NCBI RefSeq assembly: GCF_000189555.1
Contig: NC_017276.1
From: Saccharolobus islandicus REY15A
GTDB taxonomy: Archaea > Thermoproteota > Thermoprotei_A > Sulfolobales > Sulfolobaceae
Direction: 5' to 3' (one strand)
Length of the DNA stretch: 64,000 bases
Shown here: one piece after another, positions 12,954-16,669 of the stretch
Position numbering within the stretch: the stretch's first letter is position 1
Layout: each line of letters starts with the position of its first letter
Notes under the pieces: model-generated
Seen by the model: only the letters and a program-made list of their open reading frames with translations
Databases searched by the model: none
Told to the model about the DNA's origin: nothing
Translations under genes and position numbers: made by a program

Positions 12954-14444
12954 GTGATTAAAAGATTACTGAAAGTATTCTTTAAATTGACACCTAGAGT
13001 ACTAGCATATAGGGAGTTCAGAAATAGAATCCTAAAGGAAATTCCAATCGATAAAAAGGAGATAGCGGAAGAAGCTAAGAAATTTGTTGACACTTTAATT
13101 GAACTAGGCCCCACATTTATCAAGTTTGGACAAATTCTTTCAGTTAGACCTGATATCATGCCGGAAGCGTATATAAAGGAACTGGCCAGATTACAAGACG
13201 AAGTCCCACCTGCTCCATTTAACCAAGTAAGTAAAATTATTGAAGAGGAACTTGGCAATAGTATAAAAATTTTAAAAGAAATATCTTCAGCCTCTTTAGG
13301 TCAAGTTTATCTAGGGGAGTATGATGGGAAAATAGTTGCAATTAAGGTAAATAGGCCTAGAATAAAGGAGATTGTGAATGAAGATATTCAAGTAGTGAAG
13401 AAATTATTACCACTTCTTAGATTTGTATTTGATGAATCATTTACGGAAATAATAAAGGTGTTCTTAGAAGAATTTTCTAGAAGAATATTTGAAGAAATGG
13501 ACTATACTAAGGAAGCGTTATATTTAAATAAGATCAAGGAGGAGTTGTCAGATTATCCATCCTTAAGAATACCTTCAATAATAAAGGCTACTAAAAGAGT
13601 GTTAGTAATGGAGTATATTAAAGGGTATAAAGTTACAAGCGAAGAAGCAAAAAAGATAGTTGATAACAGAATATTAGCATATAGAGTATTTAGATTGTTC
13701 ATGTATATGTTACTAAATAAGGACTATTTTCATGCAGATCCTCACCCTGGTAATATAGCCGTAGACGAGCAAGGGAATTTAGTACTCTATGACTTTGGAA
13801 TGTCTGGGAAAATAGATGAAAAGACTAGAAACTTATTGATTAGGGCATATGTTGCAATGATTAGAATGGATGCCGATTCACTAGTAAGGGTGCTAGACGA
13901 GTTAGGGGCAATACAACCTTTCGCGGATAGGAGGGTATTAGCGAAGGGACTGAAGCTCTTCATGCAAGCAATGCAAGGAATAGAAGTTAGTGAACTAGAA
14001 CTGGAAGATTTTATGAAACTAGCCGATCAAGTATTCTTTAAGTTTCCGCTTAGAATGCCTTCTAAACTTGTTCTGCCTTTTAGAATGATTAACGTTTTAG
14101 ATGGAACATGTAGAGAAATAGACAAGGATTTTGACTTTGTTAAATCTTCGATAACTTTTTTAGAAGAAGAAGGGTATACAACAAAAGTTGTTATAGAACA
14201 AGTAAGAGAAATAGTAGATGGAATTTGGAATAGATTTAGGAGCTTTCTACTATCATATTCACAACAGCAAGAGTTAATAAACATACAAAGCGGTAGGAAA
14301 GGTAGCATAATAACTAATTATATTCCTCAAATGATATTAGTTATAACCATAATATTTTATGCTATAACAAAAGATATCATAATTACCCTCCTTATGGTCA
14401 TTCTAGCATTATCAATACCGCTTAGCGGAAGAAAAAATACATAA
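12954..14444 (+). CDS. ABC1/UbiB atypical kinase family protein
   Basis: LGPTFIKFGQILSVRPD, ASLGQVY, FHADPHPGNI, DFGM; C-terminal TMs. Confidence 0.92.
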   Translation: MIKRLLKVFFKLTPRVLAYREFRNRILKEIPIDKKEIAEEAKKFVDTLIELGPTFIKFGQILSVRPDIMPEAYIKELARLQDEVPPAPFNQVSKIIEEELGNSIKILKEISSASLGQVYLGEYDGKIVAIKVNRPRIKEIVNEDIQVVKKLLPLLRFVFDESFTEIIKVFLEEFSRRIFEEMDYTKEALYLNKIKEELSDYPSLRIPSIIKATKRVLVMEYIKGYKVTSEEAKKIVDNRILAYRVFRLFMYMLLNKDYFHADPHPGNIAVDEQGNLVLYDFGMSGKIDEKTRNLLIRAYVAMIRMDADSLVRVLDELGAIQPFADRRVLAKGLKLFMQAMQGIEVSELELEDFMKLADQVFFKFPLRMPSKLVLPFRMINVLDGTCREIDKDFDFVKSSITFLEEEGYTTKVVIEQVREIVDGIWNRFRSFLLSYSQQQELINIQSGRKGSIITNYIPQMILVITIIFYAITKDIIITLLMVILALSIPLSGRKNT

Positions 14445-14455
14445 CTTAAGGAAAA

Positions 14456-14830
14456 TTATTCTATTTTGATTGATACTGAACCATCTACGGGTATCCTTAT
14501 AGTCAATACTCCATTATCGTATTTCGCTGTAACTTGAGAATCTCTCTTAATCTTTACCGGTAAACGGATTACCTTATGTATCTTAAGAGGCCTCTGAGTA
14601 GTGTATTTAGTGCCGATATACTGTATTTCCCTTTCAGCGTTGATTATCAGCTCATTTTGTGCAGATAACCTTACACTTATCTTATCTTTATTAAAACCCG
14701 CTAAATCTGCTACTATTACTAACTCTCCCCCTTCTTCGTACATATCTATGGGTGGAAAAACTGATTCATAGAATTCTCTAGACAACTCATCTAACTTTTT
14801 ACCTATTTCTCTCATTATTACATTCATCAT
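14456..14830 (-). CDS. hsp20: Small heat-shock protein (Hsp20 family, about 14 kDa)
   Basis: PPIDMYE, ADLAGFNK, AKYDNGVLTIRIP; GGTGA SD 6 nt upstream. Confidence 0.93.
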   Translation of the reverse strand: MMNVIMREIGKKLDELSREFYESVFPPIDMYEEGGELVIVADLAGFNKDKISVRLSAQNELIINAEREIQYIGTKYTTQRPLKIHKVIRLPVKIKRDSQVTAKYDNGVLTIRIPVDGSVSIKIE

Positions 14831-14836
14831 AACTTA

Positions 14837-14905
14837 TCACCTTCTTATCCTCCATAGAGCTCTGAGCAATCTATATATTAGATACCATCTTAGAATTCTT
14901 CTCAT
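14837..14905 (-). CDS. Putative leaderless 22-aa Arg-rich small protein MRRILRWYLIYRLLRALWRIRR
   Basis: ATG sits 24-30 nt downstream of TTTATAT; its stop overlaps the hsp20 SD. Confidence 0.5.
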   Translation of the reverse strand: MRRILRWYLIYRLLRALWRIRR

Positions 14906-14928
14906 AAATATATCTTAGTGGGATTGCG

Positions 14929-14935
14929 ATATAAA
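14929..14935 (-). promoter_or_regulatory. TATA box of the small-ORF/hsp20 transcript
   Basis: TTTATAT at -30 to -24 from ATG 14905. Confidence 0.55.
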
Positions 14936-15069: not shown

Positions 15070-16384
15070 GTGAACTACCACGCCCTAACGGACGTGGCTT
15101 CCTGCTTCACAGCCGAGGCTTGCCAAAGGTAGAGGTCTCAGCTCCACAGGCACTAAGGGTCGTTCCGACCCCGATCTACTCAGAATATTAAGAGAAGCAT
15201 TATAATCACGATCTACAGTCCAACCGCAGGAAGGACAGACAAACACACGATCAGCCAAAGCCAAGTCCTTCTTAACGTAACCACACCTAGCACAAATCAT
15301 TGAAGTAAAAGCAGGATTAACAAAACGAATCTCCTTACCATACTTCCCAACTTGATACTCCATGATACTCCTAAGCTCATGAAAAGCAACATCGTGTAAC
15401 CTCATCCTCAGCCTTCTGAGAGACTTACCAACAATTTGCTTAACATGAATATCCTCCATTACGAGAACATCATAATGCTCAGCAAAATACTTCCCCAGTT
15501 TCATGTACATATCCATCCTCAGGTTCTTCAAGTGCTCATAAGCCCTTGCAAGCTTAATCTTCGCCTTAAACCAGTTGTGTGACAAGAACTTCTTCCTTGA
15601 AAGAGCTTTATGAAGCCTCTTCATCTTGTTGAGTGCCTTCTCGTAAGGCCTCATGTTTGGCACGTATTCCCCATCAGAGGTAGTGAGAAGTTTCTCTACA
15701 CCAACGTCCACAGCAACAACTTTGTTTGTCTTGGGGAGTTGAGGATACTCTTGATCCACAACGAAAGTGATGTACAATCTGCCTGAAGGTGCCAGCTTGA
15801 CTACTACCCTCTCCACTTTTTCCAGTTGGAAATCCCTATGAACAACGACGTTGAAGATACCTAGGTTTGAAAGCTGAAGCGTCATTACCTTCTTCTTGTT
15901 CTTCTTGCTTTTCGTCCTTATTTCTCTCACCTTCATGACTTTCCAACCTGACTGAGGGTAGACTAGTGAGTACCACTTGTGTGCTTTCTTTTCCTTGGGG
16001 AAGTGTGCTAACCCTTCGAAGAACCTCTGTCTAGCGTCGTAGAATCTGTCTGCGATCTGTTGTAGTGTTTGGGAATATAGATGTTGATATTGTTTATCCT
16101 GTTTTCTTAGATCGAGAGCTAGTTGTCTCAACTCCGTCTTAGTGAGTCCTTTTCCGTCTCTCTCATGAAAATAGATGTCTGCCCAACGTAGGGTGTTGTA
16201 CACTTCACACGCTAACCTCAATTGGGCTTTTAACGCCCTCAATGTTTGTTCGTCAGCGTAAGCTCTAAAGCGTAACCCTACGTCAGACATTAATAGAATA
16301 TTTGAAAAAGAATTATTTAAATATAAGGGGGCTATCCATCCCCTCCCTCACGGAAGGGGTCTTTCGCCCCCTTTGAACCCCTTG
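15070..16384 (-). mobile_element. tnpB-only IS200/IS605 (IS1341-type, ISC1316-like) element, 1315 bp
   Basis: CTTAA before the left end, LE hairpin AAAGGGGGCGAAAG...GCCCCCTT, right end ...GTAGTTCAC; ends match the element at 25679. Confidence 0.88.
15085..16290 (-). CDS. tnpB: TnpB RNA-guided endonuclease
   Basis: RuvC residues VAVDVG, VMED, DRDYNA; Zn finger CARCG...CPSCG. Confidence 0.95.
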
Positions 16385-16422
16385 TTAAGATAAACATTTA
16401 TCCTAATGACGATACTTTGAAC

Positions 16423-16476
16423 TCAGTTAGCATGGCTCGGGTTCATCACAAATCAAGCCGAGCCCTTCTCAGCATC
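16423..16476 (-). ncRNA. Box C/D-like sRNA with mutually complementary guides
   Basis: C ATGCTGA, GAAGGGCTCGGC, D' TTGA, C' GTGATGA, ACCCGAGCCATGCTAA, D CTGA; about 53 nt. Confidence 0.6.
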
Positions 16477-16669
16477 AGAGCAAAACTAACGTGAGTATTA
16501 CGAATGCTGTAGCTATTGCAACTAATGTAGAACCAATAATATATAAATCATTTCTAACTCGCGGAAAGAGATTAAAGTAAGCCAAGCCGACATAGGTAAC
16601 TCCAAATATAGCCATGACTAACGCTATAATCAAGAAGGAAATCTTAACAAATATTAGTGGTAAAATCAT
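16475..16669 (-). CDS. Small membrane protein with two TM helices
   Basis: 64 aa, two hydrophobic segments. Confidence 0.65.
   Translation of the reverse strand: MILPLIFVKISFLIIALVMAIFGVTYVGLAYFNLFPRVRNDLYIIGSTLVAIATAFVILTLVLL

Follow-up and report, generated by a model that had tools for sequence, protein, structure and literature searches.

A predicted leaderless micro-gene ahead of hsp14 in Sulfolobaceae and its probable translational coupling to the small heat-shock gene

A small open reading frame (sORF) of 22 codons lies immediately upstream of hsp14, the gene for a small heat-shock protein (sHSP), in a 64-kb stretch of the Saccharolobus islandicus REY15A genome (64,000 nt of contig NC_017276.1, ~34% G+C, hereafter the window). 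We propose that this sORF is a leaderless micro-gene, translationally coupled to hsp14 and a candidate for the post-transcriptional control of HSP14, and we put the probability of this composite reading at roughly 0.6. For the post-transcriptional part of the heat-shock response of Sulfolobales, the sORF offers a specific and genetically tractable candidate. The gene pair would also provide a clean natural case of leaderless initiation followed by termination-reinitiation in Crenarchaeota.

All coordinates given below for the sORF and hsp14 refer to the minus strand of the window. The sORF extends from an ATG at 14905-14903 to a TGA at 14839-14837 and encodes MRRILRWYLIYRLLRALWRIRR, a peptide with eight Arg residues (all specified by AGA or AGG), two Trp residues and no acidic residue. 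This ATG is the earliest possible start, since an in-frame TAA stands four codons before it. The stop codon is formed by the last three bases of the Shine-Dalgarno (SD) sequence AAGGTGA of hsp14 (14843-14837) and is followed by a 6-nt spacer, TAAGTT (14836-14831), which holds a second in-frame stop (TAA) and leads to the hsp14 ATG at 14830. The downstream cistron, hsp14 (14830-14456), encodes a 124-aa small heat-shock protein (Pfam HSP20, E=2.6e-9) that is closest to Hsp14 of Sulfolobus sp. E5-1-F (90% identity) and whose orthologues carry the name 'archaeal heat shock protein Hsp14'. On the other side of the sORF, promoter P1 (14942-14929) consists of a TATA box, TTTATAT (14935-14929), at -30 to -24 from the ATG and of the A-rich stretch AAGTAAA before it, which resembles a B recognition element (BRE). 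A preliminary description of this DNA had reported the TATA box, the Arg- and Trp-rich frame without acidic residues, and the sharing of its TGA with the SD 6 nt before the heat-shock gene (there called hsp20); each of these was confirmed. Among the 339 ATG-initiated ORFs of 18-40 codons in the window, TTTATA occurs at -33 to -22 in only two, and the sORF preceding hsp14 is the only one of these two that is free of acidic residues and ends in an SD.

Orthologues were collected from the DNA upstream of syntenic hsp14 genes, both in genome contigs that encode Hsp14 and by a metagenome scan, and the resulting set comprises 20 sequences in 14 clusters at 80% nucleotide identity. The same frame, with an ATG start and 20-26 codons, is open upstream of hsp14 in all 20. 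Its carriers include, besides the window, the metagenome strain L049 (99.5% identity to the window), Sulfolobus spp. E5-1-F and A20, S. tengchongensis, Saccharolobus caldissimus, metagenome-assembled genomes (MAGs) of Saccharolobus, S. acidocaldarius, Sulfolobus sp. S-194 and Ca. Aramenus, as well as several metagenome lineages with an Hsp14 just 48-61% identical to that of the window. For instance, the sORF of S. acidocaldarius encodes MRRLIRWYMFYRLLVALLRRRRGRR and lies upstream of Saci_1665, with which it shares an ATGA overlap. The peptides conform to the consensus M-R-R-[IL]-[IL]-R-W-Y-[LMIV]-[ILF]-Y-[RK]-[LI]-[LI]-x-x-[LIF]-x-(basic tail). A profile built from them matched exactly one ORF per locus, always directly before hsp14, and had no other match in the 64-kb window. 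The conservation of the frame in related species, earlier proposed as a check on the sORF, was in this way found across the Sulfolobaceae.

Several measures indicate that this frame is conserved as a coding sequence. In a MAFFT alignment made without regard to the frame, all indels are multiples of three, and the column entropy at codon positions 1, 2 and 3 equals 0.71, 0.33 and 1.06, respectively, compared with 1.25 in the 45 nt upstream. With 20 sequences, the corresponding values are 0.87, 0.65 and 1.30, and the third position is significantly more variable than both the second (Wilcoxon P=5e-4) and the first (P=2e-5). The ratio pN/pS, calculated by the method of Nei and Gojobori, is 0.31 in frame (pS 0.73, with synonymous sites near saturation), and 0.81 and 1.72 in the other two frames, which serve as controls of identical phylogeny and composition. 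In composition-matched shuffles the chance of an open frame is 0.04-0.32 per sequence, with a product of ~1e-14 over the 14 clusters; this product uses one member per cluster and is illustrative only, as the lineages are not fully independent. Frame conservation in the orthologues thus excludes chance as the origin of the sORF, and we regard it as very likely that the sORF is a real, selected coding gene. Purifying selection acts on the peptide over its whole length.

On a short evolutionary scale, the window and L049 differ at nine positions in 1,811 nt, two of which are in hsp14 and silent. One further difference, at position 14876 (A on the minus strand of the window, G in L049), changes ATA to ATG in the sORF and results in a non-synonymous, conservative replacement (I10M). 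Between close and intermediate species, the identities of the peptide and of Hsp14 run closely together (0.91 and 0.90, 0.77 and 0.75, 0.68 and 0.60, 0.64 and 0.60 for four species pairs).

The promoter is conserved along with the frame. In 20/20 sequences an A/T-rich TATA-like box is present at -31 to -23 from the sORF ATG and is preceded by an A-rich BRE-like stretch. The spacing from the TATA box to the ATG is 21-24 nt in all orthologues, and transcription is therefore predicted to start at or beside the sORF AUG. No SD is found ahead of the sORF ATG in the window. In Sulfolobales, first cistrons are usually leaderless and downstream cistrons are led by an SD. The preliminary description had seen such a layout here, and the conserved promoter geometry bears it out: the sORF is predicted to be a leaderless first cistron, with its start codon (14905-14903) as the putative transcription start, followed by hsp14 as an SD-led second cistron.

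The junction between the two cistrons is equally constrained. In 14 of the 20 sequences, the TGA that closes the sORF belongs to a GGTGA SD; four others have a stop that overlaps the start of hsp14 (ATGA or GTGA), and the remaining two have a TAG located 2 nt before the ATG. The distance from the sORF stop to the hsp14 start is +6 nt in the window and ranges from -7 to +8 nt across the whole set. Coupling by termination-reinitiation (TeRe) needs an overlap or a very short distance between genes, and distances of -8 to +10 nt are deemed predictive; in Haloferax, 40-60% of it is lost at 13-14 nt and none remains at ~22 nt (Huber et al. 2023, PMC10666635). Some hsp14 genes have annotated or apparent non-AUG starts directly after the sORF stop, including TTG at L035 and L039, GTG at L048, L050 and L051, and ATC (as annotated) at L046, and such codons would be easier for reinitiating ribosomes than for de novo initiation. 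Functional translational coupling between the sORF and hsp14 is probable. A translational-coupling leader that senses arginine had been put forward as one explanation of the locus; its coupling component is the part best supported by the stop/start geometry of all 20 sequences, while its arginine component fails for the reasons given below. More generally, the proposal that the sHSP transcript begins with an unannotated micropeptide gene gains support from a frame, a promoter spacing and a stop/SD overlap that are conserved together, and from selection of the coding type.

The arrangement resembles the TeRe gene pairs of Huber et al. (2019, PMC6728339; 2023, PMC10666635) in that the stop codon overlaps or lies near the downstream start, the two ORFs are co-directional, and there is no space between them for a promoter or terminator. 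It differs from these pairs in that the upstream ORF is unannotated, very short (20-26 codons) and leaderless by prediction, with a stop that is usually the UGA within a GGUGA SD. In addition, the published coupling comes from Haloferax and E. coli, whereas that of the sORF and hsp14 is predicted, and in Sulfolobales. Another related set is formed by the small and upstream ORFs that ribosome profiling detected in Haloferax volcanii (Gelsinger et al. 2020, PMC7261190), which are likewise unannotated short ORFs in an archaeon with leaderless mRNAs as the norm. Those ORFs are experimental and mostly not shown to be conserved, whereas the hsp14 sORF is defined by its deep conservation in Sulfolobaceae and its fixed link to a chaperone gene, and is known from sequence alone. 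Overall, the sORF and hsp14 would belong with the conserved upstream small ORFs that are coupled to a downstream gene, and would stand out among them as leaderless and archaeal, with the UGA of an SD as the stop codon and a peptide family not listed in databases.

We know of no heat-shock transcription factor in Sulfolobales. The most detailed study, by Baes et al. 2023 (PMC10653856), reported for S. acidocaldarius that hsp14 mRNA is unchanged upon heat shock and HSP14 protein increased, from which post-transcriptional control was inferred; its authors searched untranslated regions (UTRs) and did not consider an upstream ORF. The co-induction of the micropeptide with the sHSP, as suggested in the preliminary description, is not supported by this flat mRNA level, and a translational role of the sORF is the more interesting possibility because HSP14 rises with no change in its mRNA. 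Under the proposed mechanism, the conserved TATA box would direct transcription to start at or next to the sORF AUG and give rise to a two-gene operon of the sORF and hsp14. Ribosomes would initiate at the 5'-terminal AUG without an SD and make a short basic and aromatic peptide. They would then terminate on the UGA that forms the last three bases of the hsp14 GGUGA SD or, in other species, on the overlap with the hsp14 start. The terminating ribosome would thus already be located at the hsp14 initiation region and could reinitiate 6-9 nt downstream, while a ribosome in transit over the sORF would also cover the hsp14 SD. In such a scheme the output of Hsp14 would be tied to translation of the sORF and not to the mRNA level alone, which would make the sORF a likely site of the reported post-transcriptional control. 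That this coupling is the basis of the HSP14 heat response itself is a more tentative proposition, to which we give somewhat less than even odds.

Several observations weigh against this reading or restrict it. First, for the most divergent pairs Hsp14 is better conserved than the peptide (peptide and Hsp14 identities of 0.36 and 0.56 for the window and L054, 0.35 and 0.77 for L045 and L054), and the mean identity over all 190 pairs is 0.53 for the peptide and 0.63 for Hsp14. Second, the C-terminal tail of the peptide is partly the purine-rich SD read as AGR and AAR codons, so that not all of the conservation is driven by the peptide. Third, hsp14 has an SD and could also initiate independently, and the coupling may be partial. 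Fourth, in the window and several relatives the sORF codons ATA TAT AGA (I-Y-R) resemble a TATA box ~45 nt before the hsp14 ATG, and in some species this string could give rise to an hsp14-only transcript with a leader of ~15-18 nt. Finally, Metallosphaera-like hsp14 genes appear to have their own promoter and no demonstrable sORF homologue; the sORF arrangement is therefore not indispensable for Hsp14.

The last point comes from three loci at which Trp/Arg-rich ORFs of 20-24 codons are detached from hsp14. These ORFs are located at ~1354-1416 in L047 (Metallosphaera yellowstonensis), at ~1104-1169 in L058 and at ~2858-2932 in L003, and encode the candidate peptides MKWWRILWFLLRLGRLLRRR, MGKFFWLRLLWWILRRRWKRR and MRRLAWIYLLYRLYRLFAKVLHKG, respectively. 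The loci are Metallosphaera-like or, in one case, from a Sulfolobaceae MAG. Each ORF, with a TATA-like box of its own, stands 31-84 nt before hsp14, and a separate GTTTTTATTTT box is present ahead of hsp14 in L047 and L003. The three resemble the family in composition and position but were rejected as members of it, as their profile scores (3.8, -0.1 and -5.0 bits, in the order L047, L058, L003) are within the range of composition-matched shuffles. Among the loci examined at more distant Hsp14 homologues outside Sulfolobales, no sORF was found.

Among the alternatives, the one that survives best treats the peptide as the point of the locus and the coupling as incidental: a free, trans-acting micropeptide would, for example, associate with Hsp14, as a stoichiometric partner or a client-like ligand, or would bind nucleic acid or the membrane surface. 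The residue class is conserved along the whole peptide and not at a few positions. Positions 3, 6 and 12 are always basic (20/20) and position 15 is often so (12/20), the aromatic residues W7, Y8 and Y11 are nearly invariant, and aliphatic residues occupy the positions in between, ahead of the basic tail. Pairs of hydrophobic or aromatic residues stand between the conserved basic positions. Subunits of heteromeric complexes are also over-represented among tightly coupled gene pairs (PMC10666635). Moreover, the distance from Y11 to the last residue varies between 10 and 14 residues across the orthologues, which fits a free peptide better than a device that depends on the geometry of the ribosomal tunnel, and the detached ORFs described above are similar in composition.

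On the other side, those detached candidates score no better than shuffles, and no homologue, domain or solved structure suggests a function for the peptide. Nor is it amphipathic, as had been claimed. The alpha-helical hydrophobic moment (100 degrees) of the window peptide is 0.14, compared with a shuffle mean of 0.33 (P(shuffle>=obs)=0.86); it is at or below the shuffle mean in 18/20 orthologues, above it in L053 and L056, and significantly higher in none (0/20, lowest P 0.185). The longest uncharged run is 5-7 residues in 20/20 orthologues, which rejects a membrane-spanning helix, since a single pass needs ~15-20 uncharged residues. A period-3 arrangement of the (R-h-h)n or 'S4-like' type was also considered; the 120-degree moment reaches significance in no single peptide (median P 0.2), and the period-3 spacing of the basic residues is suggestive. 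Lastly, the position of the stop codon on or beside the hsp14 SD and start is strictly retained in all 20 sequences, which shows that the cis arrangement itself is selected. For these reasons we consider a free micropeptide with merely incidental coupling rather unlikely. It is compatible with the coupled micro-gene that we favour and not exclusive of it: the full-length conservation of residue class, together with the variable distance from the aromatic residues to the stop, favours a free functional peptide, and the sORF most likely also yields a functional product in fixed proportion with Hsp14, beyond its role as a spacer.

Database searches returned no relative of the peptide. Ten exact peptide sequences were absent from a collection of ~15 billion proteins, and a profile of the 20 peptides had no match at E<=1e-3 among 1.84 billion representative proteins. 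The peptides likewise had no match in Pfam or NCBIfam, including Ribosomal_L41, even at E<=10, and none in the PDB, including the chains of archaeal ribosomes, by sequence or profile at E<=10. The sORF peptide family is thus absent from protein databases, and the locus adds a family that is invisible to gene callers. In the literature on hsp14 regulation, upstream ORFs, small proteins and ribosome profiling in Sulfolobales, which was covered incompletely, nothing describing the sORF was found. The ribosomal protein eL41 (~25 aa) is similar in its length, compared with 20-26 aa here, and in its very high Arg and Lys content; it differs from the sORF peptide, which is hydrophobic or aromatic at about half of its positions. 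Given the lack of profile and PDB matches, eL41 and other known tiny ribosomal proteins were rejected as identities of the peptide.

A second alternative places a sensor in the nascent chain. According to it, the Arg-, Trp- and Tyr-rich chain would act solely in cis and would never emerge from the tunnel; at normal temperature it would hold the ribosome at the UGA, over the hsp14 SD and AUG, and faster release at heat shock would result in more reinitiation with unchanged mRNA. The known arrest peptides TnaC, SecM and MifM depend on aromatic and basic residues located 10-17 residues from the peptidyl-transferase centre. The sORF peptide is selected at the amino-acid level and is short enough to sit wholly in the tunnel at termination, in all orthologues its stop codon falls on the site of downstream initiation, and no RNA structure is available as a sensor; the post-transcriptional rise of HSP14 upon heat shock, reported in PMC10653856, would also be accounted for. 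The likeness to TnaC-tnaA, SecM-secA and MifM-yidC2 extends to a short upstream ORF with a conserved amino-acid sequence, rich in aromatic and basic residues, which brings a ribosome beside the downstream ribosome-binding site. Unlike the sORF, these systems have arrest motifs at a fixed spacing and usually an mRNA hairpin or Rho site that is remodelled by the stalled ribosome. In the sORF the spacing from the aromatic residues to the stop varies by four residues, the C-terminal residues, which would be nearest to the catalytic centre, are the least conserved part, and the mRNA is archaeal, leaderless by prediction and devoid of conserved RNA structure; homology to the three leaders is not detectable. 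We also know of no arrest peptide in archaea. A nascent-chain thermometer is improbable in view of these differences; if true, this would make the sORF peptide the first leader of the arrest or 'nascent-peptide thermometer' type to be described from Archaea and would supply a mechanism for the reported post-transcriptional induction of HSP14.

A third alternative takes the region to be non-coding, with promoter elements and a 5'-UTR that contain an internal TATA box, a protein site or an RNA thermometer, and the ORF as a by-product. Bacterial sHSP mRNAs commonly carry RNA thermometers. As in the ROSE and fourU elements of ibpA and hsp17, the sORF region is a candidate post-transcriptional element in the 5' part of an sHSP mRNA that is centred on the SD, whereas an SD-occluding hairpin is absent and the region is protein-coding. 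The leader does not fold better than shuffles (single-sequence z=+1.27), RNAalifold predicted 0 base pairs for 14 diverse orthologues, and the leader region had no Rfam match, either locally or over the window. An RNA thermometer or riboswitch was rejected on these results. A TGGTA string in the sORF recalls the Phr site quoted in PMC9133787; it was rejected as a Phr-like site, as it lies 19 nt past the predicted transcription start, has the wrong spacing to a partner element and is explained by the Trp-Tyr codons.

The internal TATA-like string ATA TAT AGA, which also speaks for a non-coding region, is not retained as such. It is broken to ATG TAT in L049, ATC TAT in L034, ATC TAC in L002 and L060, ATA TGG in L055-L057, ATG TGG in L054 and ATA TTC in L053, and each of these orthologues retains the aliphatic-aromatic-basic residue class. 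Many orthologues thus lose the string and preserve the residue class, which places the constraint on the peptide. An internal hsp14 promoter was rejected as a general cause of the conservation, while single species may have one. The third-position variability, the whole-codon indels, the frame-specific pN/pS and a frame that is open in 14 clusters (P ~1e-14, with the reservation stated above) are also unexpected for a promoter or UTR. The non-coding reading is largely refuted and retains a very small probability.

Finally, an arginine-sensing leader, either attenuation-like or in the manner of the fungal arginine attenuator peptide, which the eight Arg among 22 codons and the similar length of ~22-25 codons bring to mind, is hardly credible and did not survive as proposed earlier, given that AGA and AGG are the standard Arg codons (AGR accounts for 91.8% of Arg codons in the long ORFs of the window), that Lys freely replaces Arg at most positions in several lineages (for example, MKIGKVAKWYLMWKLLLFFIKRRKR), that the purine-rich SD, translated in frame, accounts for part of the Arg run, that alternative hairpins are lacking, and that the downstream gene encodes a chaperone unrelated to the arginine pathway.

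Downstream of the coupled pair, a gene for an ABC1/UbiB-type atypical kinase (12954-14444, plus strand) is convergent on hsp14. The two stop codons are separated by 11 nt, which leaves nearly no space for separate terminators, and this synteny is kept at every Sulfolobales hsp14 locus examined.

Upstream of the promoter, the window contains a 1,320-bp TnpB-only element of the IS200/IS605 type (15070-16389, minus strand), with a tnpB ORF at 15085-16290 and the Pfam domains OrfB_IS605 and Cas12f1-like_TNB. L049 represents the empty site for this element, with flanks 98.4-99.5% identical to the window, and the boundary at 15070 was derived from this comparison. Judged by the empty site, the element is a recent, strain-polymorphic insertion, with its end 134 nt before the sORF TATA box. 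Transcripts of the element or its omega-RNA could conceivably run on into the promoter of the sORF and hsp14.

Beyond the TnpB element, a conserved element of ~59 nt (16421-16479, minus strand) begins at the stop codon of a gene for a 64-aa membrane protein (16475-16669). Its conservation extends to E5-1-F, S. tengchongensis and L049, and its sequence combines C/D-box-like motifs with a 7-bp GC hairpin. All 12 of its sub-threshold Rfam matches belong to archaeal or eukaryotic C/D-box families, nine of the 12 covering the full length of the model, and the best of them is sR2 (17.5 bits compared with a gathering score of 42, E=0.04). This element is probably a C/D-box small RNA with a guide that is not represented in Rfam.

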